Of a stretch of DNA of 64,000 bases, positions 2,282 to 58,191 are shown in pieces (position 1 is the first letter of the stretch; every line of letters starts with the position of its first letter). This DNA is from Rebecca billardiae RCC1528. Lineage: Eukaryota; Protista; Haptophyta. The stretch is from the NCBI GenBank assembly GCA_965240325.2, contig OZ251240.1:1364001-1428000 (forward strand), read 5' to 3'. Position numbers and translations under genes: made by a program. Below the pieces are notes generated by a model, which ran no database searches, was not told the origin of the DNA, and saw only the letters and a list, made by a program, of their open reading frames with translations.

Positions 2282-4697
2282 CGTACGTACTAGCGCTACT
2301 ACTAAATTATTCTGAATACCGCACAACGAGTCACCGGAGCCGGAGGCTCTGCCGCGCGGGGCTCCGCGCAGTGGCCTAACTCAGATTCGGACCGTACATG
2401 ACCCGCCCGGCAGTGAGTGATGATGACCCCCCGCCCCGCCTAATTGCTGGCGCGTCACGTCCGGTCCGTTCGGGCCCCGAGCGCACTCTCAGGTAGTGAC
2501 ACTACATACAGAGTAGTCACTCCGAGACCGAGTCCGAGCAGCCACTGACTGACACGGCGGCCCACGGGATTGTCAGCCCGGAGCTACGGCGGCAATGTTA
2601 CGGCGCGCGGGCCGCCAACTGGTCCCGACTGTCCAGCCGGCGCCCGCGGCAGGCCGCGGCTCCGTGCGGACCGCGCGTAGTCGGGCTCGGCCCGCGACAA
2701 TCACGACGACTACAATAATTCCCGAGTTCCAGCCCGCCAGTGGCACTCCGCAGGTCGCCGCAGGCCCGGCCGAGGCCCCGGGCGCCACCCGCCGCACCCG
2801 GATCGAAGACATTAGTAGCCGCTGCGGCGTTATCGATAGCCTGGTCCAAACGCACTGGAGCACTTTCGGGGATTTTATCGCCAAATGAATGCGGGCCCCT
2901 AGGCACGCGCTCACACCCGGAAACAGCGTAGCAAATGGGCCCAGCCCGGGCGGAGCAAAAGTCTCGGCCTAAAAATCGCATCCGCGGCCCGTCGTGAGCG
3001 TGCGCGCGCGCGCCGCGGACAACTACGGACACATAGAGAATCGTCAGTCTGAATGTGGGTAATTAATTAGCCGAAATGAGCCCAAACGCACGAACTTACT
3101 TATTGGCGTACGTCGAGGCGAGCATGAACCTTGGTACAGGCCATTAGGATGGGCTCTGGTCTGTGCGCAAGTGGCCGTACTCAACTACTGCAAGATCGAC
3201 TATATTACCCATTTTACCCGCATATTATGGGCAATGTACCCGCATAAATATGCGTTCTGAGTCTGTATAATTAAATGCCACTATGTCGTTACATATTCGC
3301 CATAGGTGGGTAGCTGTCCCAGGCTGCACGATTAGTGCGGCGCCCGGGGTGCAGTGGTCGGACGAGGCTCCGCCTGGCCTTCCGCGCACTCCTGCAGACA
3401 AGAAGAGGGCCGGACTCCCACCCGGCCAGGCGTGCGGCAGTCGGTCAGGTGCTGGACCTGGTCTGGAGACCATCTCCTGCGTGGCGACTGGCCGATATGC
3501 GGCACAACGCGCGCCGCCGTGAGCCACACGGCAGGTTCGCAACGGATCCGGATCGCGTGTCCATGGCGGCGTGCATCGAGTCATTCAAGCTGTCAAGTCG
3601 CGTGCCACGCCCGCCCTTTCACTTGGGGCATCAGCACTGCCTACAACGACGACATGTGCGTCCTTAGACGAGGCATAATCGCGGTTCTAGCTGCTCGTCC
3701 AAGGGTCAGATCGCACGTCTTTGCTCGCCCGACAGCCTCAACGGCGGACTGATGTGATCCGCGGGTGACGATGCGACCGCTTCGAGTGCGCCTACGGCCA
3801 CCACCGGGGTGGGGATCGTTCATGGGCACCCTCCGCGTGCCATGACATGCTCTGGCCGTGCGTGGTGACTTGACCCACCGCGCGTAAACGGGGAAGACAC
3901 CTGAGCACGTGCTTCCGAGCCACCCGAATGGCACAATGTGCCACCCATGGACACCAAACACCTGCCAGAGCGCGAGCCTTGCGTGCTGGAGTAGCCGTAC
4001 GACACCATGGAAGACGTATGAGCGCTCTCAACCATCTTCAAGCGACGACTCCGTCGACTCTGCCTCGCAGACCGCGGTACGATCCTCGACCTTGTGCTCG
4101 CAGCAAAGGCCATGACGGTAAAGCAGCACCCAGGGGATGGGAGTCAGCCGGCAGCCACTACACTGCGACTGTACACACCCAGCCCCGCAAGGCGAGCCAT
4201 CCTGATCGCCCCCAGCCCGTCATACAGCTCCACGAGAAGCACAAATCGACTGCCGCCGCTCTGGACGACCCATGCGCAAACGTGACGGGACTGGCCGGAT
4301 GAAGCGTTGGCAATGCGCAGCGCGCCCAACGCTGGTGGTGGCATCGAGTACATGCTAGGGGTAGGCGGTGCCCCATGCGAGCCGTCGCGTGCCGCGCATA
4401 TTCCCGGAGGTGCCCCTTCTCGAAGGCGCAGCGCAACCCAGCAGCTGAGCGTTCGACGCGCGCCGTCGGGCGAGAAGTCGACCTGGCGACGGACCGCGGG
4501 CGGCGGAAGCAACGCAGACATGTCGCTCAAGATGTGCACGCACACCGCCGGGGCACCCGAACGATGTGTCCAGCACTACACCTGACACGAGGCGGCGCAG
4601 TCGTCCAGTCGAGGCTCTCGAGCCCCTTCCGACCTTCGTCGCGGCGAGCCGTCGGACGCCCGGTGGCGATTTTTTGACGAGCGCGACGAGCGCAACC

Positions 4698-6392
4698 CGG
4701 TTTGGCGCTTTTCGGCCAACTCAACAGAAGGATGTTCTGTTGAGTTGGCCGATCGGCGAGGGGGGGGGGTGGGCTCGACAACAGGGCCCAGGCTCTGTTG
4801 AGTTGAGCTTGGAGGCCAGCTGGACTCGACAGAAGAATGCTCTGTTGAGTCGGTCGGACCTTGGCGGCCTCTCGACAGAGCCCTGGTCTGTTGAGTGATC
4901 GTTGGTGGACACCGGTGATGGCTGAAGGGGGTGCCTTGGGGCGCACCGACGGCGTAAAGGCGCTGCGGGCGCTGCGGTGCGCGCGACGGCGGCGCGCCCG
5001 GTGGCGCTGCTGTTGGAAGCTACTGCGCCCCTCTCCACCTCGCGCGCTTCGCTCGTCGTCGCCGTCTCCGCACCTGCTACCGGCATGCACGCGTGCGCAG
5101 CGCCTCGGACGCCCGTTGACGGCGCGCGCCCCGGCAACCGCCCATCACCGGCGGCGGCGAGTGCTGTTGCGGTTGGATGGAATCGGATGGTCTGCTGATA
5201 GTTGGACCAACCAACCAACGCCCTCGGTGGGCTTGGGCTTTGGTGTACGGCGCGTTCGGTGGAACTTGAGCCTCGGCACACTTCCCAGCGAAGTGGCCCA
5301 CCTCGACGTGGCTGGCACGCTCGTCACGCGCTCCCGAGCGCTCGTTTCGCGGTGCCGCAGGCCTTGGGCAGACCAGTCAGACATGGCGCGACCGCATTAC
5401 CGGGCCATGTGCGCACCACATCCGCGCTACGTGGCCTGCGCTCTGGACGACTGGGAGTCAATGCCCGGACCCACTGCATTCCACTGCCCCGCATGCACCC
5501 CGAGTCACCGTCAGAAGGCGTCGACGAGCGCAGAGCGGGTGCGCGGGAGTTCAACCAACTCGTGTACCTTCTTGCAAGCACCAGTGGCGAGGTCGCACGC
5601 CCAATCGTGACCAGCCGTGGAACTTGAGCCGGTCGGCAGCAAAACCACCGTGTGGCGGCCGAGATGAAGTAGCAGCGTGCAACTGCAAGGAGGAGGCGCG
5701 GTGCGTGTCCGCGGCTGGCGAGAGGCGTCCGGACCGTGATGTTCTCGGCCGCGTCCGCGCGCTTCCCGCCGCCGCAGGCCCCGTGTACGCCCGTCGTCGC
5801 CCTCGCCGCGTGGGGCGTGGGCGCCCACCGAGCTCAAGTTCCATGGCAAGGAAGTACTGTACTGATCTACAGTTTACTATGATACAGTACGTAGTAAGAT
5901 TTAACGTGCACACTTGGTTCAACAGTACGTAGTGATCTTGACAATGTGGCCGTGCACGCGGCAACAGGGCTCAGGCGGCCCAGTTGTCGAGTGCAGGCGT
6001 GTGTGGCTTGCGATGGCAGCCAGCCGTCAGCCGGGGCGCCACGCCCACGGTTCGCTGGTGGGCTGGCCCGATGGCGTCGCAGAGCTCACGCGTACGGGGG
6101 AGGAGGGCATCGACGAGGAGACGACCAAGGGCGAGAAGCAGCCGGGGGCACGCAGCACGGGGCTCGGAGCATGCCGCCAGCACGCGTGCCTCCACACCGT
6201 CGCACGTCACCCTTGCTCGTAGCTGTGCGCTGTGCTGCACTCATCTCACCATCGCCCATGCTACGGGCGCGGCCGGGTGGTGGACATCTACCTGTCGGCG
6301 CAGCACTGGCATCGGTGGTCGCCAGACACTTCTCGACTTGCTCTGCGCGTGACAGCAAGGAGACGGCAGCGCCACAGCTGTGTGAGCAGATG
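4698..6392 (+). repeat. Long inverted repeat, left arm (~1.7 kb)
   Basis: Reverse complement of 13329-15017. Mirrored ORF translations are identical or nearly so (e.g. 5624..5932+ equals 13789..14097-). Confidence 0.97.
4714..4895. promoter_or_regulatory. Cluster of four palindromic sites CTC(A/G)ACAGA-N7-TCTGTTGAG (putative protein-binding sites)
   Basis: Sites at about 4714-4750 (16-bp perfect stem), 4773-4808 (degenerate), 4823-4851 and 4871-4895. Mirrored at 14819-15001. Function is inferred. Confidence 0.55.
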
Positions 6393-6499
6393 AGGTCCTA
6401 CTACTCTACTCGGCGAGGCAGTACTGGCATGGACTGCAATCCTGGTGCATGCGAGCTACTGGCATGTTCCCCTACTCAGACGGCAGGGCCATCAATACA

Positions 6500-9400
6500 G
6501 TACGGTGCTGCTTCGGATACACGCGCCCAGCGCTGCTGGTAATAGTAGTAGCGGCGCTGTTGATGCTGCAGCAGCAAGCAGCAGTACAGTACCACGACGG
6601 GCGGCGGCAGTCGCTCCAGCTATCAGCTCGGTGGTGCTCGCTTGAACGGCCTGGGCAATGGCGCGCCGAAAGTAGCGACCTAGCCCATCGCGTCCACCGC
6701 GATGGGGTCGCTGGCAACTGATGATGCTGCGCCCGCGCCCATCCGGGCCAACACCAGCAGCAGCCACGCTCGGCGAATCTGCACCGCATGCGGCAGCAGC
6801 TGCTGGGATGGTCCCGCTGCGGATGACGGCGTTCGCCGCAGATGACAGCTCGGTGTCGCTCGCTCGAGGGGCCACGGCGACGGACGCGTCGAGCGCGTTG
6901 ACGTCACTCCACGCGACCACGGCACTGCCCAGCGCGCTGGAGCCGCTCCCATCTGGTGCTGCTGTGCCTGCGCCCAGCTGGGGCCCAGCTGCAGCAGCGC
7001 TCGACTCCGCGCCGCATTGGCGGCACAAGCAGGGATGGTGCCACGGCGGGCGGCGGCGGTCAACGCAGCTGGAAGCTCGGCGGTGCACGCCCGAGAGGCG
7101 TGGGCGCTGGGCGCACCGAGCGCCGTGACGCTGCTCGCCTCGCCCATGGCGCTGGAGCCGCTGCCATCCGGTGCTGCTGCGCCCGCGCCCAGCCGTGGCA
7201 GCAGCAGCAGCGCTCGACTCCGCGCCGCGTGCGGCAGCAGCAGCAGGGATGGTGCCACGGCGGGCGGCGGCGGTCGACGGAGCTGGAAGCTCGGCGGTGC
7301 ACGCCCGAGAGGCTTGGGCGCTGGGCGCACCGAGCGCCGTGACGCTGCTCGCCTCGCCCATCGCGCTGGAGCCGCTGCCATCCGACGCTGCTGCGCCCGC
7401 GCCCGGCCAGGGCAGCAGCGGCAGCGCTCAACTCCGCGCCGCGTGCGGCGGCAGCAGCAGGGATGGTGCCACGGCGGGCGGCGGCGGTCGACGCAGCTGG
7501 AAGCTCGGCGGTGCACGCCCGAGGGGCGTGGGCGCTGGGCGCACCGAGCGCCGTGACGCTGCTCGCCTCGCCCATGGCGCTGGAGCCGCTGCCATCCGAC
7601 GCTGCTGCGCCCGCGCCCAGCCGTGGCAGCAGCAGCAGCGCTCGACTCCGCGCCGCGTGCGGCGGCAGCAGCAGGGATGGTGCCACGGCGGGCGGCGGCG
7701 GTCGACGGAGCTGGAAGCTCGGCGGTGCACGCCCGAGGGGCGTGGGCGGTGGGCGCATCGAGCGCCGTGACGCTGCTCGCCTCGCCCATGGCGCTGGAGC
7801 CGCTGCCATCCGGTGCTGCTGCGCCCGCGCCCAGCCGTGGCAGCAGTAGCAGCGCTCGACTCCGCGCCGCGTGCGGCAGCAGCAGCAGGGATGGTGCCAT
7901 GGCGGGCGGCGGCTGTCGACGCAGCTGTCAGCTCGGCGGTGCACGCCCGAGGGGCGTGGGCGCTGGGCGCACCGAGCGCCGTGACGCTGCTCGCCTCGCC
8001 CATCGCGCTGGAGCCGCTGCCATCCGGTGCTGCTGCGCCCGCGCCCAGCCGTGGCAGCAGCAGCAGCGCTCGACTCCGCGCCGCGTGCGGCAGCAGCAGC
8101 AGGGATGGTGCCACGGCGGGCGGCGGCGGTCGACGGAGCTGGAAGCTCGGCGGTGCACGCCCGAGAGGCTTGGGCGCTGGGCGCACCGAGCGCCGTGACG
8201 CTGCTCGCCTCGCCCATCGCGCTGGAGCCGCTGCCATCCGACGCTGCTGCGCCCGCGCCCGGCCAGGGCAGCAGCGGCAGCGCTCAACTCCGCGCCGCGT
8301 GCGGCGGCAGCAGCAGGGATGGTGCCACGGCGGGCGGCGGCGGTCGACGCAGCTGGAAGCTCGGCGGTGCACGCCCGAGGGGCGTGGGCGCTGGGCGCAC
8401 CGAGCGCCGTGACGCTGCTCGCCTCGCCCATGGCGCTGGAGCCGCTGCCATCCGACGCTGCTGCGCCCGCGCCCAGCCGTGGCAGCAGCAGCAGCGCTCG
8501 ACTCCGCGCCGCGTGCGGCGGCAGCAGCAGGGATGGTGCCACGGCGGGCGGCGGCGGTCGACGGAGCTGGAAGCTCGGCGGTGCACGCCCGAGGGGCGTG
8601 GGCGGTGGGCGCACCGAGCGCCGTGACGCTGCTCGCCTCGCCCATGGCGCTGGAGCCGCTGCCATCCGGTGCTGCTGCGCCCGCGCCCAGCCGTGGCAGC
8701 AGCAGCAGCGCTCGACTCCGCGCCGCGTGCGGCGGCAGCAGCAGGGATGGTGCCACGGCGGGCGGCGGCGGTCGTCGTAGCTGGAAGCTCGGCGGTGCAC
8801 GCCCGAGGGGCGTGGGCGGTGGGCGCACCGAGCGCCGTGACGCTGCTCGCCTCGCCCATGGCGCTGGAGCCGCTGCCATCCGACGCTGCTGCGCCCGCGC
8901 CCAGCCAGGGCAGCAGCGGCAGCGCTCAACTCCGCGCCGCGTGCGGCAGCAGCAGCAGGGATGGTGCCATGGCGGGCGGCGGCGGTCGACGGAGCTGGAA
9001 GCTCGGCGGTGCACGCCCGAGGGGCGTGGGCGCTGGAGGCACCGAACGCGGTGACGCTGCTCTCCTCGACCATCGCGCTGGAGCCGCTGCCATCCGGTGC
9101 TACTGCGCCCGCGCCCAGCCGTGGCAGCAGCAGCAGCGCTCGACCCCGCGCCGCGTGCGGCGGCAGCAGCAGGGATGGTGCCACGGCGGGCGGCGGCGGT
9201 CGACGGAGCTGTCAGCTCGGCGGTGCACGCCCGAGGGGCGTGGGCGCTGGAGGCACCGAACGCGGTGACGCTGCTCGCCTCGCCCATGGCACTGGAGCCG
9301 CTGCCATCCGACGCTGCTGTGCCGGCGCCCAGCTTGGGCAGCAGCGGCAGCGCTCGACTCCGCGCCGCGTGCGGCGGCAGCAGCAGGGATGGTGCCATGG

Positions 9401-10085
9401 CGGGCGGCGGCTGTCGACGCAGCTGTCAGCTCGGCGGTGCACGCCCGAGGGGCGTGGGCGCTGGAGGCACCGAACGCGGTGACGCTGCTCGCCTCGCCCA
9501 TCGCGCTGGAGCCGCTGCCATCCGGTGCTGCTGCGCCCGCGCCCAGCCGTGGCAGCAGTAGCAGCGCTCGACTCCGCGCCGCGTGCGGCAGCAGCAGCAG
9601 GGATGGTGCCATGGCGGGCGGCGGCTGTCGACGCAGCTGTCAGCTCGACGGTGCACGCCCGAGGGGCGTGGGCGGTGGGCGCACCGAACGCGGTGCCGCT
9701 GCTCGCCTCGCCCATGGCACCGGAGCCGCTGCCATCCGACGCTGCTGCGCCGGCGCCCAGCTTGGGCAGCAGCGGCAGCGCTCGACTCCGCGCCGCGTGC
9801 GGCGGCAGCAGCAGGGATGGTGCCACGGCGGGCGGCCGCAGCAGCTGAAAGCTTGGCAGTGCCCACCCGAGAGGCGTGGGCGCTGGACGCACCGAGCGTG
9901 GTGTCGCCGCTCGCCTCGTTCCGTAGCGCGCTCGAGCCTCTGCCATTCGATGCCGCTGCGCCCGCGCCACGGCGCCGCTGCACGGCTGCAGCTGGCAGCA
10001 GCTGCGCTCAGGAGGCTTCGCGCCGCATGCGGTGGTAGCAGCAGGGAGGTGCCACAGCCAGGCCGGCGGCGGTGGTCGGGCGGTG
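6500..10085 (+). repeat. 214-bp tandem repeat array (~14 conserved units plus degenerate edge units)
   Basis: Motif GCAGGGATGGTGCC recurs every 214 nt from about 7030 to 9812. The period is not a multiple of 3, so the ORFs cycle through frames. Confidence 0.95.
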
Positions 10086-10899
10086 CTGAGTACTGCTTGG
10101 CACGCCGACGACCGGTCGTTATAAACTACGACTCTACTAGCTGCTGACCAGCTGACCGTGTCGCGCCGGAGTGTAGCACGGTGCCCGGATGAATATGACG
10201 CCTATAAGCTGACGGTCGGCGCGGATCTAGTACCGCGCGCGTCACGTAGTCGCCTCATCATCGTCGTCAGCTTAGTCACTGAGCTTATTACTCTGATGAG
10301 TGATGTCGACTACTGCGCGCTGCTACATCATTGAGTTTATTGAGCCGTATAGTCCCGTAAGACTAAGAACAGCAGTAGTCGTAATAAGCAGATCGACGAC
10401 TGCTAAGCCATCAGCGCAGCAGACTATACTCATACTAAGTACTGCTTCATCGCACTTATTATTATACCCGGACGCGACGACTGATCGAGTGTGACTGTGA
10501 GCCGCCAGCACAACCGTGGCGCCATCAGGCATCACGACTGCGTATATGTATGCTCCGGATATATATATATCTGCGCTGTGACGGTGTGGTCATGTGGTGA
10601 TGTGACTTCGTCGGACGAACGGTGGCCGCGGATCGGGAGACGGCCCGGTCGGACTGCCTGCTGATGCTCAGTTGCGCGCGGACTGCGTCAGTCTGATCGA
10701 CGCGATATATATATATATATATATACGCCACTCCGCCTCCGTCCCGTGTAGGCCGGGATGCGCTGATGTCGTAGCCAGTGATGATGCGCGTGATCGATGC
10801 TGATCGATTGACTCATCGATGCTGACGAAAACTACGCTACTACTGTGCCGCCTACCTGCCGGGCTACGACTCGGGTCTGCGCCGCCGGGCTTGCGTGTA

Positions 10900-13160
10900 T
10901 CAGCGTCACTGCATTGCGCGCGCCTTCCGCCCAGGCCCCTCGCGCGTGCAGCACCGAGCTGATAGCTGCATCCACCGCCGCCCGCCCGCCGTGGCGCCAT
11001 CCCTGATGCTGCAGCCGCACTCAGCGCGCCAGGGCGCAGGCGCAGCAGCATCGGATGGGAGCGTCTCCAGCGCGCCAGGCGAGGCGAGAGGCGTCAGCGC
11101 GCTCAATGCGCCCGCCGCCCAGGGCCCTCACGCGCACACCGCCGAGCTTTCAGCTCTAGAGACCACCGTCGCCCACCGTAGCACGATCCCTGCTGCTGCC
11201 GCCGCACGCGGCGCGGAGTCGAGCGCAGCCGCTGCTGCCCAAGCTGGGCGCGGGCGCAGCAGCGTCGGATGGCAGCGGCTCGAGCGCCATGGGCGAGGCG
11301 AGCAGCGGCACCGCGCTCGGTGCGCCCACCGCCCACGCCCCTCGGGCGTGCACCGCCGAGCTTCCAGCTCCGTCGACCGCCGCCGCCCGCCGTGGCACCA
11401 TCCCTGCTGCTGCTGCCGCACGCGGCGCGGAGTCGAGCGCTGCTGCTGCTGCCACGGCTGGGCGCGGGCGCAGCAGCACCGGATGGTAGCGGCTCCAGCG
11501 CGATGGGCGAGGCGAGCAGCGTCACGGCGCTCGGTGCGTCCAGCGCCCACGCCCCTCGGGCGTGCACCGCCGAGCTTCCAGCTACGACGACCGCCGCCGC
11601 CCGCCGTGGCACCATCCCTGCTGCTGCCGCCGCACGCGGCGCGGAGTCGAGCGCTGCTGCTGCTGCCACGGCTGGGCGCGGGCGCAGCAGCACCGGATGG
11701 TAGCGGCTCCAGCGCGATGGGCGAGGCGAGCAGCGTCACGGCGCTCGGTGCGTCCAGCGCCCACGCCCCTCGGGCGTGCACCGCCGAGCTTCCAGCTACG
11801 ACGACCGCCGCCGCCCGCCGTGGCACCATCCCTGCTGCTGCCGCCGCACGCGGCGCGGAGTCGAGCGCTGCTGCTGCTGCCCAAGCTGGGCGCGGGCGCA
11901 GCAGCACCGGATGGCAGCGGCTCCAGCGCGATGGGCGAGGCGAGCAGCGTCACGGCGCTCGGTGCGTCCAGCGCCTATGCCCCTCGGGCGTGAACCGCCG
12001 AGCTGACAGCTGCGTCGACCGCCGCCGCCCGCCGTGGCACCATCCCTGCTGCTGCCGCCGCACGCGGCGCGGAGTCGAGCGCTGCTGCTGCTGCCACGGC
12101 TGGGCGCGGGCGCAGTAGCACCGGATGGCAGCGGCTCCAGCGCGATGGGCGAGGCGAGCAGCGTCACGGCGCTCGGTGCGTCCAGCGCCCACGCCCCTTG
12201 GGCGTGCACCGCCGAGCTTCCAGCTACGTCGACCGCCGCCGCCCGCCGTGGCACCATCCCTGCTGCTGCCGCCGCACGCGGCGCGGAGTCGAGCGCTGCT
12301 GCTGCTGCCACGGCTGGGCGCGGGCGCAGCAGCGTCGGATGGCAGCGGCTCCAGCGCCATGGGCGAGGCGAGCAGCGCCACGGCGCTCGGTACGCCCACC
12401 GCCCACGCCCCTCGGGCGTGCACCGCCGAGCTGACAGCTCCGTCGACCGCCGCCGCCCGCCGTGGCACCATCCCTGCTGCTGCCGCCGCACGCGGCGCGG
12501 AGTCGAGCGCTGCTGCTGCTGCCCGCGCGGGCGCAGCAGCACCGGATGGCAGCGGCTCCAGCGCGATGGGCGAGGCGAGCAGCGTCACGGCGCTCGATGC
12601 GCCCACCGCCCACGCCCCTCGGGCGTGCACCGCCGAGCTGACAGCTCCGTGGACCGCCGCCGCCCGCCGTGGCACCATCCCTGCTGCTGCTGCCGCACAC
12701 GGCGCGGAGTTGAGCGCAGCTGCTGATGCCCCGGCTGGGCGCGGGCGCAGCAGCACCGGATGGCAGCGGCTCCAGCGCGATGGTCGAGGCGAGCAGCGTC
12801 ACCGCGCTCGGTGCGTCCAGCGCCCACGCCCCTCGGGCGTGCACCGCCGAGCTGACAGCTACGTCGACCGCCGCCGCCCGCCGTGGCACCATCCCTGCCG
12901 CTGCCCGCGGCGGGGAGTTGAGCGCAGCTGCTGCTGCCCAAGCTGGGCGCAGGCACAGCAGCACCAGATGGCGACGCCTCCAGCGCGCTGGGCAGTGCCG
13001 TGGGCGCATCGAACAGCGTCACCGTGCTCGGCGCGTCCGTCGTCCAGGCCCGTCGAACCAGTGACACCAAGCTGTCAGCCGCGGCGACCGCCGTCATCCG
13101 CGCAGGACCATCCCAGCGGCCCAGCTGCTGCCGCCGCGTGCGGCGTAGAGTCGAGCGCCC
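10900..13160 (-). repeat. 214-bp tandem repeat array in inverted orientation (~11 units)
   Basis: GGCACCATCCCTGC recurs at about 11180, 11394, 11608 ... 12885. It is the reverse complement of the left array unit. Confidence 0.95.
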
Positions 13161-13328
13161 CTCATCCTGCCTGCAGCGTGGGGCGCAGGTGTTTGAAGCA
13201 GCACCGGGCGGTTGGTCCTGCGCTCCTGGGCACGGCTATGCACCTGTTGGGCTCATGGATGCGGGGGAATGCCAGCGCCCGCCATGCGTGCTCAGTCTAT
13301 CAGCCTCACTGAGCAGAGCAGCACCTGA

Positions 13329-15017
13329 CATCTGCTCACACAGCTGTGGCGCTGCCGTCTCCTTGCTGTCACGCGCAGAGCAAGTCGAGAAGTGTCTGGC
13401 GACCACCGATGCCAGTGCTGCGCCGACAGGTAGATGTCCACCACCCGGCCGCGCCCGTAGCATGGGCGATGGTGAGATGAGTGCAGCACAGCGCACAGCT
13501 ACGAGCAAGGGTGACGTGCGACGGTGTGGAGGCACGCGTGCTGGCGGCATGCTCCGAGCCCCGTGCTGCGTGCCCCCGGCTGCTTCTCGCCCTTGGTCGT
13601 CTCCTCGTCGATGCCCTCCTCCCCCGTACGCGTGAGCTCTGCGACGCCATCGGGCCAGCCCACCAGCGAACCGTGGGCGTGGCGCCCCGGCTGACGGCTG
13701 GCTGCCATCGCAAGCCACACACGCCTGCACTCGACAACTGGGCCGCCTGAGCCCTGTTGCCGCGTGCACGGCCACATTGTCAAGATCACTACGTACTGTT
13801 GAACCAAGTGTGCACGTTAAATCTTACTACGTACTGTATCATAGTAAACTGTAGATCAGTACAGTACTTCCTTGCCATGGAACTTGAGCTCGGTGGGCGC
13901 CCACGCCCCACGCGGCGAGGGCGACGACGGGCGTACACGGGGCCTGCGGCGGCGGGAAGCGCGCGGACGCGGCCGAGAACATCACGGTCCGGACGCCTCT
14001 CGCCAGCCGCGGACACGCACCGCGCCTCCTCCTTGCAGTTGCACGCTGCTACTTCATCTCGGCCGCCACACGGTGGTTTTGCTGCCGACCGGCTCAAGTT
14101 CCACGGCTGGTCACGATTGGGCGTGCGACCTCGCCACTGGTGCTTGCAAGAAGGTACACGAGTTGGTTGAACTCCCGCGCACCCGCTCTGCGCTCGTCGA
14201 CGCCTTCTGACGGTGACTCGGGGTGCATGCGGGGCAGTGGAATGCAGTGGGTCCGGGCATTGACTCCCAGTCGTCCAGAGCGCAGGCCGCGTAGCGCGGA
14301 TGTGGTGCGCACATGGCCCGGTAATGCGGTCGCGCCATGTCTGACTGGTCTGCCCAAGGCCTGCGGCACCGCGAAACGAGCGCTCGGGAGCGCGTGACGA
14401 GCGTGCCAGCCACGTCGAGGTGGGCCACTTCGCTGGGAAATGTGCCGAGGCTCAAGTTCCACCGAACGCTCCGTACACCAAAGCCCAAGCCCACCAAGGG
14501 CGTTGGTTGGTTGGTCCAACTATCAGCAGACCATCCGATTCCATCCAACCGCAACAGCACTCGCCGCCGCCGGTGATGGGCGGTTGCCGGGGCGCGCGCC
14601 GTCAACGGGCGTCCGAGGCGCTGCGCACGCGTGCATGCCGGTAGCAGGTGCGGAGACGGCGACGACGAGCGAAGCGCGCGAGGTGGAGAGGGGCGCAGTA
14701 GCTTCCAACAGCAGCGCCACCGGGCGCGCCGCCGTCGCGCGCACCGCAGCGCCCGCAGCGCCTTTACGCCGTCGGTGCGCCCCAAGGCACCCCCATCACC
14801 GGTGTCCACCAACGATCAACTCAACAGACCAGGGCTCTGTCGAGAGGCCGCCAACGTCCGACCGACTCAACAGAGCATTCTTCTGTCGAGTCCAGCTGGC
14901 CTCCAAGCTCAACTCAACAGAGCCTGGGCCCTGTTGTCGAGCCCACCCCCCCCCCTCGCCGATCGGCCAACTCAACAGAACATCCTTCTGTTGAGTTGGC
15001 CGAAAAGCGCCAAACCG
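13329..15017 (-). repeat. Long inverted repeat, right arm (~1.7 kb)
   Basis: Reverse complement of 4698-6392 with only a handful of substitutions and small indels. Confidence 0.97.
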
Positions 15018-15295
15018 TATTGACGAGCGACGAGAAAAATCGGGAGAAATGAGGCGCCCAAAATCCGAAAAAAGGCTTTTTCAGTGGCGAAAATCGGGAT
15101 GGACCAGGCTATTATCGAGTATTCGATATATAAGTAGACCGTGAGTGTGATAATGACTCAGCCCGGCGCCGGCGGCCGACGAGTAACTAGGGCGGCGCGG
15201 GACCGGCGGCGGACGACGCCAGAATGTCGACTTCATATGTCGAGAATAAATATATATCGATCTGCTGCTCGGCGACTGCTCGACGTCACTCACCG

Positions 15296-17017
15296 TAGGG
15301 GGGCCAAAGTGGCACTGTAGCGTTACTGACGGCCACGAGCGCGGGTCCTAGCGAGTGTTTAGAGCTGATTTCGGGCTGGATAATCATTTGCCCTCTGGAG
15401 GGGTCTGGGCCGGCCATGGAAAAAAATCAGGTGCACATACCCTGAATATAGGGCGTAACGGCTAGTATATTTACTTATTAGAATGAGCCTGAACTTATTG
15501 GAAACGGCATGTAACGGTCGTCCTATATGTGACATATAGACCATGTCGACCTCACTTTGATAGAGCATCTCAGCGAGATCGTTCTGAGTCCCCAGCAGCA
15601 GCAGGTCCCAACATGCGATATAGGCTGTGTACTGGCAGGCTGTCAAATATGTAGTTTCCTAGAAGCCACCGATCGTTACATACCCACTGTGTATATAGGC
15701 GCCGCCATGCTGATGAATACAGCCTCGTCTGATCTCGAGCTGCGAGATACGTTTTCAGACTGTGTATACGGCCACGCGTACGGCGTATTGCAGACATAGT
15801 AGACCCAAAGCACCGGCCCCACGTCCTTAGCCCGGGAGTGCTCTCGGTCATAGTCAAGGTTTAAAGTGACTCGAGCCAACCGTCACCGCTCCCTGGCCGA
15901 GACCTACGAGGCAGGTCAAATCTGTCGTCGTCGCAGTGCGGCACAGTGCCGAGCATGCGATTCGGCAGCAAACGTCTGCTCCAGGCGGTGGCTGGCGTGT
16001 CTGCACCAAACCAGGCTGGATGGGATTGGTCCATATAGGTACGCACTACCCTGTTCCGCGCTATTTCTGGGCTTAGGGGCGGATATTCGGCCTACAGAGG
16101 CTGATCCGGCGCTGTTCGGCGCTCCTGGCTGGCTGCGCGGAGCCCAACGGCAAGCGCCGGCGTGTGCAAGGTGTCAAGATTGAGACGGTCTCTGACGCTC
16201 CCGCCGGTCTTGGGCGCACCAGGGTGCATGAGGGCCCATCTGCATCTGCTTCTGCAGGCATGAGCGTCACAGGGGCGCGCTTGCAGGCACGGTCGAGTGC
16301 ACGTCGGACCTGTCGAATGAGCCAACCGCTGCCTGCGAGCACGTCCGCGACGTCCTGAGAGGCGAATGGGAGGCGCCCAGACGCCATCAGAGGGCACACG
16401 TGACCCATACCCAACGTACTGACCATCGCAAGTGCCACGGCAGGTGCAAACACGGGCCCTACAAGCGGAACATGACGGTTGCGAGCTCCGCGGAGGTGTT
16501 GCGCGCGAGCTCGCGCCGGTCTGCTGACGGCGATTCCGGCGCAGCAGGGCAGGTTAGGCGAGCTGGGCATCCACATACATACATGGGCACTTGGTGCGAG
16601 CATCGATCTCAACTGTGCGAGTTGATCATGAGCCACACCGTGCGGTAGCGTGACGGGCGCACGCAGCGCGCCAATTCAAGCCGGCCGACGCGCGCCGCGC
16701 ACGGCGCGAGATGGCCAAGAAGCGGGTGGTGAGCCGCTGGTGGCGCAAAGGCACGGGTCAGTAGCGCCCACCAGCGTCACGCGCGCGCGCACCCGAGACC
16801 ATCTCGGCGTCTCAAAGGTCGCGAGCGCGCGGCGGTCCACTGCCTCCGGCCGCTCGCGCTGGAGCGGAACCGAGCTCTGAGCGTCCGAAGGCGTGAAGCT
16901 CGATTTTCGAGCGGGGTCCGAGAAAAAGGCTCCGCGCCACCCTAAAAGGCCGAGGGCGGAGCGAAAATGCGACGCGACTTTGCTTTTCATTTTTAAATGG
17001 GCGGTTTGGCCCCCCTA
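15296..17017. mobile_element. 1.7-kb non-autonomous DNA transposon (13-bp TIR, 7-bp TSD)
   Basis: TIR TAGGGGGGCCAAA at 15296-15308 and TTTGGCCCCCCTA at 17005-17017, flanked by the direct repeat CTCACCG (15289-15295 and 17018-17024). Confidence 0.85.
15542..15870 (+). pseudogene. Possible decayed hAT-like transposase fragment
   Basis: 'IVLSPQQQQV..DIGCVL..CSFLEATDRYIPTV' resembles the hAT 'LxxxxW..VLxP...TxxLE..YPT' helix region. A downstream in-frame '*SRFK' could be a decayed DPRFK. Stop codons are present. The match is by eye only. Confidence 0.3.
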
Positions 17018-17095
17018 CTCACCGTACTGCCGTAGTCATGTACGATCACCGAACGAAGAGTGGTGGCGTGCGCGGCGACAACGCACACATACCGG

Positions 17096-17862
17096 CTAAG
17101 CATGGCTGCTACCCACGCGCCGACGGCGAGCGGCGCGCGTCGTCACGACCAGCGCCCCAGCCGCCGCCGAGAGCACCACCACGAGCGCGAGCACGCCCGC
17201 AGCCATGCCCATGGCCGCCGGGAGTGCCGGTGTGATGAGCTGCTCGGCCGACGACGCGGCGGGGCCGCTCAGCCAGGACGACGACGGCGTGCCGGCCGCG
17301 AGCTCGGGGCCGTCTTGCAGGTCGCCGTCCCACGGCGCGGCGAGGGCGCGGCCGTGCATGCGGGTCTTGACCATGGTCCTTGCGGCGGATGCGACGATCT
17401 GCGTACGACGCGCGAGGGGCCGGCAGCGCGCGGTGGGCGGCAGCAGGGCTCAGCAGTGCGCGCAGAGCCGCGGCGGCGCGGCGCGCCGAAGCAGGCGCTG
17501 GCACGCGCACGGCGCGGTGGACGCTCTCTCGCCCACCCCGCCAGGCGCGGCGCGCGCGCACCGCGTAGAAGCACAAGGCCCTGCACACTTCCAGTGGAGG
17601 CGGCGACGGCGGCGGCGGTGGTGGTGACGGCGGCGGTGACGGCGGCGGCGGCGGTGGTGATGGCGGCGGCGACGGCGGTGGAGAGGGCGGCGGTGGTGGC
17701 GGTGGCGGCGGTGGTGACGGCGGCGGCAACGGCGGTGGAGAGGGCGGCGGCGGCGGCGGCGGTGACGGCGGCGGCGAGGGAGGCGGCGGGGGCGGCGGCG
17801 AGGGTGGCGGCGAGGGTGGCGGTGGCGGCGGCGGCGAGGGCGGCGGCGAGGGCGGCGGTGAG

Positions 17863-17895
<33 letters not shown>

Positions 17896-18164
17896 GAGGG
17901 TGGCGGCGGCGGCGGCGGCGTGGGCGGCGGCGGCGAGGGCGGCGGCGAGGGCGGCGGCGGCGGCGGCGGCAACGGCGGCGGCGGCGACGGCGGCGGCGAC
18001 GGTGGTGGTGGGGGCGGCGATGGCGGGGGCGAGGGCGGCTCCGGCGGTGGCGGCGGTGAGGGTGGCGGTGAGGGCGGGGGTGGGGGCGGGGGATCAGCAA
18101 AAGAAGCCGCTGCCGACGCCAGCAGAATCATCACGAGCGCGACGACACCATGGGCATGCCGCAT
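17096..18164 (-). CDS. Ser-Pro-rich extensin/pherophorin-like membrane glycoprotein (exons 18164-17562 and 17398-17096)
   Basis: Signal peptide MRHAHGVVALVMILLASAAASFA, a long (S-Pn) tract, intron 17561(GTGCGC)-17399(CGCAG) and a C-terminal TM helix 'AAGVLALVVVLSAAAGALVV' followed by RRRR. Confidence 0.8.
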
Positions 18165-52445: not shown

Positions 52446-52693
52446 GCCACGCTGCCCGGCGCGGCATGCCCAAGGTCTGATCGAAGCAGCCTGTCGGCTT
52501 GAGGCACGACGACGACAGCGCAGCATTATTGGCGTCGTCAGCTGACAGCTGATGAGGCCGCGGGCGGCAGCCAGCAGCATCATCCGTGACGTCATCACGT
52601 CGTGTACGTAGTATAGCTATAGTATCGCGTTGCGTTGTCGTCGTCGTCATCATCATGCGCTGCGCATATGACCCGTTGCCGCAAGCGTGCCAT

Positions 52694-55600
52694 CGAGCCG
52701 TCAGTATCCGCACCGCCACGTCTCGCGCACTTCGAAGCCCACCGCGCCCATCCCACCAGCGCACGGGCGCACCAGCGCACGGGCGCACCGGCGCGCCGGG
52801 TGGGCGCACGCCACCAGCCTCAGCTCGGATATGGGCATCGAGGCGCGCCAAGCGCTCGTGTGGCGGAACTTGACGGTACTGGCGGCAGCCATATCGAGCG
52901 CGCTCGAGCCGTGCCCGTGCGAGCCGACGGTATCCGCACCGCCACGTCTCGCGCACTTCGAAGCCCACCGCGCCCATCCCACCAGCGCACGGGCGCACGG
53001 GCGCACGGGCGCACCGGCGCGCCGGGTGGGCGGCGCGCCACCAGCCTCAGCTCGGATATGGGCATCGAGGCGCGCCAAGCGCTCGTCTGGCGGCATTGTG
53101 ACGGTGCTGGCAGCAGCCGTACTCGAGCGCGCTCGAGCCGTGCCCGTGCGAGCCGACGGTATCCGCACCGCCACGTCTCGCGCACTTCGAAGCCGACCGC
53201 GCCCATCCCACCAGCGCACGGGCGCACGGGCGCACGGGCGCACCGGCGCGCCGGGTGGGCGGCGCGCCACCAGCCTCAGCTCGGATATGGGGATCGAGGC
53301 GCGCCAAGCGCTCGTCTGGCGGCATTGTGACGGTGCTGGCAGCAGCCGTACTCGAGCGCGCTCGAGCCGTGCCCGTGCGAGCCGTCGGTATCCGCACCGC
53401 CACGTCTCGCGCACTTCGAAGCCCACCGCGCCCATCCCACCAACGCACGGGCGCACGGGCGCACGGGCGCACCGGCGCGCCGGGTGGGCGGCGCGCCACC
53501 AGCCTCAGCTCGGATATGGGCATCGAGGCGCGCCAAGCGCTCGAGTGGAGGCATTGTGACGTTGCTGGCAGCAGCCGTACTCGAGCGCGCTCGAGCCGTG
53601 CCCGTGCGAGCCGACGGTATCCGCACCGCCACGTCTCGCGCACTTCGAAGCCGACCGCGCCCATCCCACCAGCGCACGGGCGCACGGGCGCACGGGCGCA
53701 CCGGCGCGCCGGGTGGGCGGCGCGCCACCAGCCTCAGCTCGGATATGGGGATCGAGGCGCGCCAAGCGCTCGTCTGGCGGCATTGTGACGGTGCTGGCAG
53801 CAGCCGTACTCGAGCGCGCTCGAGCCGTGCCCGTGCGAGCCGTCGGTATCCGCACCGCCACGTCTCGCGCACTTCGAAGCCCACCGCGCCCATCCCACCA
53901 ACGCACGGGCGCACGGGCGCACGGGCGCACCGGCGCGCCGGGTGGGCGGCGCGCCACCAGCCTCAGCTCGGATATGGGCATCGAGGCGCGCCAAGCGCTC
54001 GAGTGGCGGCATTGTGACGGTGCTGGCAGCAGCCGTACTCGAGCGCGCTCGAGCCGTGCCCGTGCGAGCCGACGGTATCCGCACCGCCACGTCTCGCGCA
54101 CTTCGAAGCCCACCGCGCCCATCCCACCAGCGCACGGGCGCACGGGCGCACGGGCGCACCGGCGCGCCGGGTGGGCGGCGCGCCACCAGCCTCAGCTCGG
54201 ATATGGGCATCGAGGCGCGCCAAGCGCTCGTCTGGCGGCATTGTGACGGTGCTGGCAGCAGCCGTACTCGAGCGCGCTCGAGCCGTGCCCGTGCGAGCCG
54301 TCGGTATCCGCACCGCCACGTCTCGCGCACTTCGAAGCCCACCGCGCCCATCCCACCAGCGCACGGGCGCACGGGCGCACGGGCGCACCGGCGCGCCGGG
54401 TGGGCGGCGCGCCACCAGCCTCAGCTCGGATATGGGGATCGAGGCGCGCCAAGCGCTCGTGTGGCGGAGCTTGACGGTGCTGGCAGCAGCCGTACTCGAG
54501 CGCGCTCGAGCCGTGCCGTGCGAGCCGTCGGTATCCGCACCGCCACGTCTCGCGCACTTCGAAGCCCACCGCGCCCATCCCACCAACGCACGGGCGCACG
54601 GGCGCACGGGCGCACCGGCGCGCCGGGTGGGCGGCGCGCCACCAGCCTCAGCTCGGATATGGGGATCGAGGCGCGCCAAGCGCTCGTGTGGCGGAACTTG
54701 AAACTTGACGATGCTGGCAGCAGCCGTACTCGAGCGCGCTCGGGCCGTGTCCGTGCGAGCCGACGGTATCCGCACCGCCACGTCTCGCGCACTTCGAAGC
54801 CCACCGCGCCCATCCCACCAGCGCACGGGCGCACGGGCGCACCGGCGCACCGGCGCGCCGGGTGGGCGGCGCGCCACCAGCCTCAGCTCGGATATGGGCA
54901 TCGAGGCGCGCCAAGCGCTCGTGTGGCGGAACTTGACGGTGCTGGCGGCAGCCGTACTCGAGCGCGCTCGGGCCGTGTCCGTGCGAGCCGACGGTATCCG
55001 CACCGCCACGTCTCGCGCACTTCGAAGCCCACCGCGCCCATCCCACCAGCGCACGGGCGCACGGGCGCACCGGCGCACCGGCGCGCCGGGTGGGCGGCGC
55101 GCCACTAGCCTCAGCTCGGATATGGGCATCGAGGCGCGCCAAGCGCTCGAGTGGCGGCATTGTGACGGTGCTGGCGGCAGCCGTGTCGAGCGCGCTCGAG
55201 CCGTGCCCGTGCGAGCCGACGGTATCCGCACCGCCACGTCTCGCGCACTTCGAAGCCCACCGCGCCCATCCCACCAGCGCACGGGCGCACGGGCGCACGG
55301 GCGCACCGGCGCGCCGGGTGGGCGGCGCGCCACCAGCCTTAGCTCGGATATGGGCATCGAGGCGCGCCAAGCGCTCGAGTGGCGGCATTGTGACGGTGCT
55401 GGCAGCAGCCGTACTCGAGCGCGCTCGAGCCGTGCCCGTGCGAGCCGACGGTATCCGCACCGCCACGTCTCGCGCACTTCGAAGCCCACCGCGCCCATCC
55501 CACCAGCGCACGGGCGCACGGGCGCACGGGCGCACCGGCGCGCCGGGTGGGCGGCGCGCCACCAGCCTCAGCTCGGATATGGGGATCGAGGCGCGCCAAG

Positions 55601-58191
55601 CGCTCATGTGGCGGAACTTGATGGTGCTGGCGGCAGACGTACTCGAGCGCGCGCGGGCCGTGTCCGTGCGAGCTGACGGTATCCGCACCGCCACGTCTCG
55701 CGCACTTCGAAGCCCACCGCGCCCATCCCACCAGCGCACGGGCGCACGGGCGCACCGGCGCACCGGCGCGCCGGGTGGGCGGCGCGCCACCAGCCTCAGC
55801 TCGGATATGGGCATCGAGGCGCGCCAAGCGCTCGAGTGGCGGCATTGTGACGGTGCTGGCGGCAGCCGTGTCGAGCGCGCTCGAGCCGTGCCCGTGCGAG
55901 CCGTCGGTATCCGCATCGCCACGTCTCGCGCACTTCGAAGCCCACCGCGCCCATCCCACCAGCGCACGGGCGCACGGGCGCACGGGCGCACCGGCGCGCA
56001 GGGTGGGCGGCGCGCCACCAGCCTCAGCTCGGATATGGGCATCGAGGCGCGCCAAGCGCTCGAGTGGCGGCATTGTGACGGTGCTGGCAGCAGCCGTACT
56101 CGAGCGCGCTCGAGCCGTGCCCGTGCGAGCCGACGGTATCCGCACCGCCACGTCTCGCGCACTTCGAAGCCCACCGCGCCCATCCCACCAGCGCACGGGC
56201 GCACCAGCGTACGGGCGCACCGGCGCGCCGGTTGGGCGGCGCGCCACCAGCCTCAGCTCGGACATGGGAATCGAGGCGCGCCAAGCGCTCGTGTGGCGGA
56301 ACTTGACGATGCTGGCAGCAGCGGTACTCGAGCGCGCTCGAGCCGTGCCCGTGCGAGCCGGCGGTATCCGCACCGCCACGTCCCGCGCACTTCGAAGCCC
56401 ACCGCGCCCATCCCACCAGCGCACGGGCGCACGGGCGCACGGGCGCACCGGCGCGCCGGGTGGGCGGCGCGCCACCAGCCTCAGCTCGGATATGGGCATC
56501 GAGGCGCGCCAAGCGCTCGAGTGGCGGCATTGTGACGGTGCTGGCAGCAGCCGTACTCGAGCGCGCTCGAGCCGTGCCCGTGCGAGCCGACGGTATCCGC
56601 ACCGCCACGTCTCGCGCACTTCGAAGCCCACCGCGCCCATCCCACCAGCGCACGGGCGCACGGGCGCACGGGCGCACCGGCGCGCCGGGTGGGCGGCGCG
56701 CCACCAGCCTCAGCTCGGATATGGGGATCGAGGCGCGCCAAGCGCTCGTGTGGCGGAACTTGACGGTGCTAGTGGCGGCCATACTCGAGCGCGCTCAAGC
56801 CGTGCCCGTGCGAGCCGTCGGTATCCGCACCGCCACGTCTCGCGCACTTCGAAGCCCACCGCGCCCATCCCACCAGCGCACGGGCGCACCAGCGTACGGG
56901 CGCACCGGCGCGCCGGTTGGGCGGCGCGCCACCAGCCTCAGCTCGGATATGGGCATCGAGGCGCGCCAAGCGCTCGTGTGGCGGAACTTGACGGTGCTAG
57001 TGGCGGCCATACTCGAGCGCGCTCAAGCCGTGCCCTTGCGAGCCGTCGGTATCCGCACCGCCACGTCTCGCGCACTTCGAAGCCCACCGCGCCCATCCCA
57101 CCAGCGCACGGGCGCACGGGCGCACGGGCGCACCGGCGCGCCGGGTGGGCGGCGCGCCACCAGCCTCAGCTCGGATATGGGCATCGAGGCGCGCCAAGCG
57201 CTCGTGTAGCGGAGCTTGACGGTGCTGGCAGCAGCCGTACTCGAGCGCGCTCGAGCCGTGCCCGTGCGAGCCGTCGGTATCCGCACCGCCACGTCTCGCG
57301 CACTTCGAAGCCCACCGCGCCCATCCCACCAGCGCACGGGCGCACGGGCGCACGGGCGCACCGGCGCGCCGGGTGGGCGGCGCGCCACCAGCCTCAGCTC
57401 GGATATGGGAATCGAGGCGCGTCAAGCGCTCGTGTGGCGGAACTTGACGGTGCTGGCAGCAGCCGTACTCGAGCGCGCTCGAGCCGTGCCCGTGCGAGCC
57501 GACGGTATCCGCACCGCCACGTCTCGCGCACTTCGAAGCCCACCGCGCCCATCCCACTGGCAGCGCACGGGCGCACCAGCGCACGGGCGCACGGGCGCAC
57601 GGGCGCACCGGCGCGCCGGGTGGGCGGCGCGCCACCAGCCTCAGCTCGGATATGGGCATCGAGGCGCGCCAAGCGCTCGAGTGGCGGCATTGTGACGGTG
57701 CTGGCAGCAGCCGTACTCGAGCGCGCTCGAGCAGTGCCCGTGCGAGCCGACGGTATCCGCACCGCCACGTCTCGCGCACTTCGAAGCCCACCGCGCCCAT
57801 CCCACCAGCGCACGGGCGCACGGGCGCACGGGCGCACCGGCGCGCCGGGTGGGCGGCGCGCCACCAGCCTCAGCTCGAATATGGGGATCGAGGCGCGCCA
57901 AGCGCTCGAGTGGCGGAACTTGACGGTGCTGGCAGCAGCCGTACTCGAGCGCGCTCGGGCCGTGCCCGTGCGAGCCGTCGGTATCCGCACCGCCACGTCT
58001 CGCGCACTTCGAAGCCCACCGCGCCCATCCCACCAGCGCACGGGCGCACGGGCGCACGGGCGCACCGGCGCGCCGGGTGGGCGGCGCGCCACCAGCCTCA
58101 GCTCGGATATGGGCATCGAGGCGCGCCAAGCGCTCGGTTGGCGGCATTGTGACGGTGCTGGCAGCAGCCGTACTCGAGCGCGCTCGAGCCG
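52694..58191 (+). repeat. 229-bp tandem satellite array (~24 units)
   Basis: CTCAGCTCGGATATGGG recurs about every 229 nt (range about 227-247) from about 52820 to 58100. The unit contains (GCGCACGG)3-4 and the palindrome CTCGAGCGCGCTCGAG. Confidence 0.97.

Follow-up and report, generated by a model that had tools for sequence, protein, structure and literature searches.

A 10-kb stretch of the genome of the haptophyte Rebecca billardiae RCC1528, in which two near-identical sequences face each other across a pair of oppositely oriented tandem repeat arrays, raises the question of what such a structure is: a segment that inverts, a source of hairpin RNA, a fault of the assembly or a mobile element. 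The locus lies in a window of 64,000 nucleotides, the whole stretch of DNA analyzed here (NCBI GenBank assembly GCA_965240325.2, contig OZ251240.1, positions 1,364,001 to 1,428,000 of the forward strand), and positions given without a contig are those of the window. Positions 4693–15022 are very probably a young, non-autonomous foldback-type cut-and-paste DNA transposon that has inserted in another non-autonomous transposon, referred to below as element A.

The overall layout agrees with the one originally predicted from the letters of the window. A BLAST comparison of the window with itself aligned the arm at 4698–6392 to the inverted arm at 15017–13329 with 99.23% identity over 1696 columns, upholding the description of near-identical 1.7-kb inverted arms; a stretch of 1470 nt within them (4923–6392 and 13329–14798) was reported at ~100% complementarity, with the arm comparison showing four substitutions inside it. 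Tandem Repeats Finder located the two opposed 214-bp arrays, with 14.2 copies at 6927–9968 (93% matches) and 9.2 copies on the opposite strand at 11032–12993 (92%). The expected AT-richer spacer of ~0.8 kb is also present, as GC content falls from ~0.77 in the arrays to 0.56–0.61 at 10001–11000, and the window contains no N bases. Because the inverted symmetry runs on through the arrays, the functional arms are ~5.4 kb and ~4.1 kb long and surround a middle domain of 828 bp (10074–10901); the symmetry is broken by two short unmirrored segments at 6393–6566 and ~13118–13328. Long inverted repeats with tandem repeats inside them form most of the 10.3-kb element, which is the structure of the foldback class, and the short middle domain between them contains short open reading frames (ORFs) only.

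The limits of the mobile unit were set by comparison with other copies in the genome. Homology between copies begins at 4693 and stops at 15022, giving an element of 10,330 bp that extends 5 bases beyond the 4698 and 15017 arm limits on each side. It begins with CAACCCGGTTTGGCGC... on the left and terminates with ...GCGCCAAACCGTATTG on the right, and it is flanked by a 7-bp target-site duplication, ACGAGCG, at 4686–4692 and 15023–15029. Element A in turn occupies 2837–15111, measures ~1.95 kb when the foldback guest is subtracted, has the ends TAGCCTGGTCCA... and ...TGGACCAGGCTA, and carries a 7-bp target duplication of its own, TTATCGA, at 2830–2836 and 15112–15118. The structure had been described as internal to element A; its position within A is retained, and what changes is its status, since it is an independent transposon with its own ends and its own ACGAGCG duplication, nested in A. 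This nesting explains the asymmetric placement that had also been pointed out, in which host DNA amounts to 1856 bp on the left (2837–4692, plus strand) and 89 bp on the right (15023–15111, plus strand).

Empty sites provide the most direct evidence for the insertion. Both foldback flanks were joined through a single ACGAGCG, the form in which the duplication is present at empty sites, and the resulting 38-nt pattern was sought across the whole genome (72 Mb, 41 contigs) with up to three mismatches allowed and the reversed pattern as a control. Among the matches listed, 57 had two mismatches or fewer and 43 of these were exact, against 0 for the control. They are direct evidence that the foldback inserted precisely in one member of a family with many copies.

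The element A family, with at least 57 members, is itself of interest in that the nine bases at its start are similar to those of the foldback ends (YAGCCNGGT; window positions 2837–15111 and 15112–17024). Judged from these ends, the host element and its foldback guest may use related transposases. A perfect (TA)18 tract lies at 2043–2079, immediately upstream of element A.

The same genome contains further copies of the foldback, and nine family loci were read in addition to matches recorded by coordinate. Eight pairs of inverted arms of the long form are distributed over six contigs, namely 1, 10, 11, 15 (two), 23 (two, one of them the window copy) and 35, and two shorter arm pairs are found on contigs 25 and 35. 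The copies on contigs 10 and 1 are collinear with the window over ~10.3 kb at 99.7%. Each long copy that retains both ends lies between 7-bp direct repeats of its own: ACGAGCG in the window, GGGGTCC on contig 10, TCAGACC for the second contig 23 copy, ACTGGCC on contig 35 and GTCATTG on contig 15. The left end of the contig 1 copy is damaged, and the contig 11 copy was read at its right end only, the left tip lying beyond a 6.4-kb insertion. Between the two contig 15 copies (1773864–1787908 and 1800683–1811314), which are separated by ~27 kb, there is no difference in the flanks or in the 7-bp duplication, and a common 1.2-kb insertion occupies the right arm of each; their shared flanks therefore trace them to one insertion, later duplicated together with its surroundings. 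This indicates a segmental duplication after the insertion, followed by the gain of 2.3-kb and 0.9-kb insertions by one of the two copies. The eight long copies, up to 99.7% identical, thus represent seven independent insertions and one segmental duplicate. Several copies with the same ends, five distinct duplications among them and two more in a short subfamily, together with the empty sites, identify the foldback as a mobile unit. A metagenome search with the exact 29-nt end pattern gave 0 matches.

Within this young set the arrays already vary in unit number. The left array has 10–17 units and the right array 6–11 across copies, while the best-preserved copies are ~0.3% apart in their unique parts, and array turnover is therefore much faster than point mutation. 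In the window, mapping unit by unit places the left array at 6567–10073 on the plus strand, with two degenerate units (6567–6903), 14 good units (6986–9973) and a partial unit, and the right array at 10901–13158 on the minus strand, with ~9 good units (12938–11028) and degenerate ends. A four-unit block of 856 bp at 7197–8052 recurs as 8053–8908 (98.2%), having been duplicated recently within the array; in the second contig 23 copy, 158 bp are duplicated internally. Later insertions have also struck other copies: one of 3.5 kb interrupts the middle domain of the copy on contig 35, both contig 15 copies carry 1.2 kb in the right arm and one of them a further 2.3 kb and 0.9 kb, and an arm of the contig 11 copy has gained 6.4 kb.

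The two arms of the window copy, although near-identical, can be told apart, and this bears on two other explanations of the structure. Their alignment shows 15 columns of difference, none more than 740 bp from the ends, and these fall into eight difference sites. Four of these sites (the CC/TA tip, 4860, 4896 and a 7-bp indel at 4920–4926) are reproduced arm by arm in every copy where they could be read, the sole exception being one site in the right arm of the contig 11 copy; the other four are private to the window copy. The diagnostic sites were scored with a k-mer test, which replaced a multiple alignment disturbed by nested insertions. In the window, the tip of the right arm (13329–15022, minus strand), which ends in the right terminal sequence given above, has TA at bases 4–5 where the left tip has CC, and three more arm-specific differences lie within 235 bp of the end.

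Near-identical arms in inverted orientation, with tandem arrays, are typical of chimeric reads, and a foldback chimera created during long-read assembly was the outcome that the original prediction had named as fatal to it. Such an artifact would not, however, recur as eight copies on six contigs with the same internal order, different flanks and individual 7-bp duplications wherever both ends are intact, nor would it leave exact empty-site counterparts of the window copy elsewhere in the genome or reproduce left- and right-arm-specific variants from copy to copy. The empty sites, the copies elsewhere and their individual target duplications exclude an assembly chimera, the probability of which we consider negligible.

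The proposal that the core of the element could flip is likewise not borne out. Arms of 1.7 kb at 99.2% identity, together with kilobases of inverted repeat, are a good substrate for intramolecular recombination, and Galileo copies do cause inversions through ectopic recombination (PMC2775673), so that an invertible segment, in which recombination between the arms turns the ~7-kb core at appreciable frequency and acts as a switch or a driver of inversions, deserves consideration. Against it, the middle domain (10074–10901, plus strand in the window) has the same orientation relative to the CC/TA tips and the three other arm-specific sites in all eight long copies, which count as seven independent insertions, and agreement of seven out of seven would have a chance of ~0.016 if both orientations were equally frequent. 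Frequent flipping is not supported by this uniformity, and we regard an invertible segment as highly improbable. Rare flips are compatible with the data, given that the copies are young and that minority orientations would be hidden in a consensus assembly.

The foldback transposon belongs to a larger family, whose members are related by their ends. The short-subfamily elements on contig 25 and at the second contig 35 locus measure 5.7 and 5.6 kb, have arms of ~611–623 bp, and are flanked by the 7-bp duplications ATGAGGC and GCGAGCG. Their ends read CAGCCAGGTTTGGCGCT... and ...AGCGCCA[A/G]ACCTTACTG. Their sequence in common with the long form is limited to the inner arm module at window positions 5945–6419 (plus strand), its mirror part and the repeat arrays. 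Conservation across subfamilies extends to the first 17 bases and to the distinction between CC (left) and TA (right) at bases 4–5. An end pattern built on this conservation, CARNNNGGTTTGGCGCT, matched the genome exactly at 30 places and its control at none; with one mismatch allowed, the counts were 84 and 29. These matches pair into further short-type elements of 6.7–13.3 kb on contigs 15, 16, 19, 22, 32 and 36. The one-mismatch search also brought out a third subfamily (CAGCCAGGTTTGGCGTT) at 17 loci, known by their coordinates alone; they coincide with the loci that carried opposed 214-bp units in a search with the spacer edges, and from these matching coordinates we infer that the third subfamily carries the 214-bp repeat. 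The family comprises at least 37 elements in total, made up of the eight long copies and at least 29 members of the two further subfamilies. Six identical matches to CAATATGGGTTGGCGCT appeared in the same one-mismatch search, for example on contig 7 at 2579364 and on contig 23 at 571344, and may be the ends of another related subfamily.

Comparison of the subfamilies reveals that the arms are modular, with a conserved tip, a subfamily-specific outer module, and a shared inner module and repeats; the sharing of the module and of the 214-bp repeat was demonstrated for the short subfamily, which was read directly. In the window, the left arm of the flanking domain (4693–6392, plus strand, 1.7 kb) matches 13329–15022 in inverted orientation at 99.2%. 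It is followed by the left-specific segment at 6393–6566 (plus strand), which has no counterpart in the right arm; inverted identity stops at 6392 and 13329, and the repeat units start at 6567. The right-specific segment, which follows the right array at 13159–13328 (minus strand), has no counterpart in the left arm. A segment of ~0.59 kb within the left arm (5255–5846, plus strand, beginning GGAACTTGAGC...) is mirrored at 13875–14466, has short imperfect inverted ends and is 87–89% similar to at least 20 dispersed repeats of ~0.55 kb on many contigs. From this similarity, the segment is probably a small element that the arm had acquired before its inverted duplication; no clear target duplication was seen around it. 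The middle domain is poorly conserved in the short subfamily, with only ~63% similarity over ~200 bp between subfamilies, which makes no case for a conserved function.

The tips of the arms contain the most distinctive short sequence features of the element. The left tip (4693–4905, plus strand) starts with the 17-bp end motif CAACCCGGTTTGGCGCT, and four palindromic CTCRACAG-N7-9-CTGTTGAG sites follow, which mark it as a candidate transposase-binding region. Each arm has four such palindromes in its terminal 210 bp; their motif occurs nowhere but in the tips and does not recur in the 214-bp unit. In the long form the first palindrome is a perfect 18-5-18 hairpin at 4712–4752, 20–60 bp from the end, with a folding free energy (ΔG) of -24.9 kcal/mol (z = -7.75; none of 200 shuffled sequences folds as well), and the other three fold more weakly. 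The short subfamily has an 18-6-18 hairpin ~120 bp from the end, at the junction between the outer and the shared inner module. In P and Galileo elements a THAP-binding site lies 50–70 bp from the end, with further sites in the repeats of the terminal inverted repeats (TIRs) (PMC3688188). By analogy, the tip palindromes of the foldback are candidate transposase-binding sites.

None of this sequence appears to encode the enzyme that would use such sites. Ten ORFs in the arms matched no Pfam family above noise, and no coding capacity was detected in either the left flanking-domain arm or the middle domain, which has a GC content of 0.55. Searches of the element against Rfam and for tRNAs returned no family and no tRNA, and the six ORFs of the 3.5-kb sequence that interrupts the contig 35 middle domain matched no credible Pfam family. 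Long ORFs in the arrays were considered as genes and rejected as high-GC artifacts, because 214 is not a multiple of 3. The element is non-autonomous. An autonomous partner was also sought through the terminal 268 bp, without success: this sequence was found only in the eight long copies, apart from one 35-bp match on contig 19.

The length of the target duplication offers a different route to the superfamily. All seven duplications read, five from the long form and two from the short subfamily, are exactly 7 bp long. hAT elements make 8-bp duplications, and Mutator elements make duplications of 8–10 bp. Duplications in the P superfamily are 7–8 bp, and those of Galileo 7 bp and rarely 8 bp (PMC4168063). 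The foldback family falls within the P-superfamily range and outside that of Mutator. It also departs from hAT, both in the length of its duplications and in that the only genome-wide match to the hAT dimerization domain (PF05699) is in a broken frame, of 89 amino acids and containing a stop. A 7-bp duplication that fits neither the 8-bp rule of hAT nor the 8–10-bp rule of Mutator makes a P-superfamily (Galileo-like) enzyme the leading candidate for moving the family, an assignment that we make tentatively.

A Mutator-type foldback, comparable to FB-NOF, Tetris or the nematode Tm1, has to be weighed against this assignment, for most foldback elements described so far have been placed in the Mutator superfamily (PMC4079207) and frames with a MULE domain are present in the genome. 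A genome-wide search with PF10551 gave five matches, two of them above the cut-off. None of these, however, coincides with or adjoins any of the family members that the end motif located, and the seven duplications are all of 7 bp and not of 8–10 bp, which leaves a Mutator origin improbable.

A P-type transposase combines a THAP domain with a split RNase H fold that holds a GTP-binding insertion, and its domains led to a single locus. PF21787, the N-terminal part of the P-type RNase H, had one match in the genome, above the cut-off at 32.1 bits, on contig 21, in an uninterrupted frame of 1322 codons (1533082–1534365, minus strand). The sole candidate in the genome for the C-terminal part, PF21789, is in the same frame, ~270 codons downstream of PF21787 and in the expected order. 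The contig 21 frame may represent either an active transposase or a gene that has been domesticated, and we treat it as a candidate transposase for the family, to which no physical or sequence link was found. A bolder proposal is that the foldbacks, at least 37 in number, and the host family A, which has similar TAGCCTGGT ends and 7-bp duplications, are all mobilized by this one intact P/THAP9-like frame; we consider this conceivable and rather doubtful. If it were true, a haptophyte alga would have a Galileo-style system in which one transposase gene without recognizable ends of its own serves many giant hairpin elements, and the question whether subterminal palindromes and repeat arrays confer specificity for the ends would be open to a direct test.

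Several observations weigh against the picture of a recently mobile, P-type transposon family drawn above. No transposase is encoded in or beside any copy examined, and the longest family members, of 12–13 kb and located by coordinates only (contig 16, 635161–648467; contig 32, 883775–895980), might be autonomous. The PF21789 match on contig 21 scores 18.1 bits with an E value of 0.29, below the cut-off, and neither exact nor one-mismatch searches placed a foldback end motif near that frame. Genome-wide searches with PF12017 and with PF21788, the GTP-binding insertion domain, gave no match, although these are weak negatives, as the control genomes were also blank. The seven target duplications are GC-rich and show no consensus resembling GTANTAC, in a sample of seven and for a motif that is specific to a family and does not define the superfamily. 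Finally, the foldback has been mobile recently, and it is known here from inserted copies, not from excision or current activity.

These results suggest how the foldback transposon may have arisen and spread. A transposase supplied in trans would recognize the conserved ends, and probably also the four subterminal palindromes, and would make staggered cuts of 7 bp in the target. The arms may have grown through inverted duplication or the exchange of modules, and unequal exchange or slippage during replication would lengthen and shorten the arrays.

The length of the inverted repeats also has consequences for nucleic acid structure. Cruciform extrusion and hairpin RNA, both raised in the original prediction, are physically plausible for the foldback. 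Long double-stranded RNA from inverted-repeat transposons is known in plants and animals, and transcription reading through the ~5-kb and ~4-kb arms would yield such a molecule. It is therefore conceivable that the main significance of the structure lies in very long hairpin RNA that feeds small-RNA silencing of the family, which would be a consequence of its being a transposon and not an alternative to it. Neither a promoter nor a conserved RNA feature was found, and between subfamilies the middle domain shows no conservation, so that we think it unlikely that this is its chief importance.

Two other repeat features of the window are separate from the foldback. A tandem array at 52686–58191 consists of ~24 units of ~229 bp at ~95% identity, in direct orientation only, and has no cross-match to the 214-bp repeat. 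CCG/GGC-rich, microsatellite-like tracts at 326–585 and 17599–18055 have periods of 9–12 bp and a GC content above 0.8, and match each other in inverted orientation.

For annotation of the genome, the consequence is that the 10-kb inverted structure should be treated as repeat DNA, and neither as a gene or a regulatory switch nor as an error of assembly. The exact ends, the duplication rule and the searchable end motif together define ~37 elements in this genome. Paired inverted repeats of kilobase length could act as hot spots at which inversions arise and replication is disturbed, which makes the family relevant to genome stability. It also furnishes a clear and very young example of the Galileo/Tetris layout outside animals, in which modular arm exchange and fast array turnover can be seen.

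The literature searched contained no paper on foldback transposons in algae or haptophytes, and the closest known systems are those of Drosophila. FB elements make 9-bp duplications, and their NOF partner is classed with MULE. The foldback described here resembles FB and FB-NOF in its long inverted arms with internal repeats, its variable middle and the predominance of non-coding copies, and differs in that neither 9-bp duplications nor a MULE-class partner was seen. Tetris of D. virilis is built, from the outside inward, of a flanking domain, an array of ~220-bp repeats, an inner domain and a middle that is non-coding (PMC4079207). The layout is near-identical to that of our element, and the two also have in common that complete copies are few, that no autonomous partner is known, and that a shorter element with common TIR ends exists (PMC4079207). 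They are set apart by the target duplication, which is always 7 bp here and 8–10 bp in Tetris, an element provisionally assigned to Mutator (PMC4079207).

Galileo matches the foldback in this respect, with duplications of 7 bp, and its TIRs can be very long, a transposase-less copy of 9 kb in D. willistoni having TIRs of 4.2 and 4.7 kb (PMC4168063). Its TIRs contain tandem repeats of ~210 bp that differ in number between the arms, chimeric arms occur, and most copies are non-coding (PMC3573991, PMC4168063). All of these traits have parallels here, in the 7-bp duplications, the very long TIRs, the repeats of similar length that are unequal between arms, the modular or chimeric arms and the non-coding copies. 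Unlike in Galileo, no transposase-bearing copy was found, the targets are GC-rich and lack GTANTAC, the ends (CARCCNGGTTTGGCG) have no demonstrated similarity to Galileo ends, the arrays are longer (9–17 units), and the host is a GC-rich protist, an alga and not an insect. The original suggestion of an algal analogue of FB and Galileo holds as regards the long arms, the internal repeats, the non-coding middle, the 7-bp duplications and the multi-copy mobile family, and fails as regards inversion by flipping of the core. The foldback is thus a further example of a kind of element known from fruit flies, with a layout that matches those of Galileo and Tetris.

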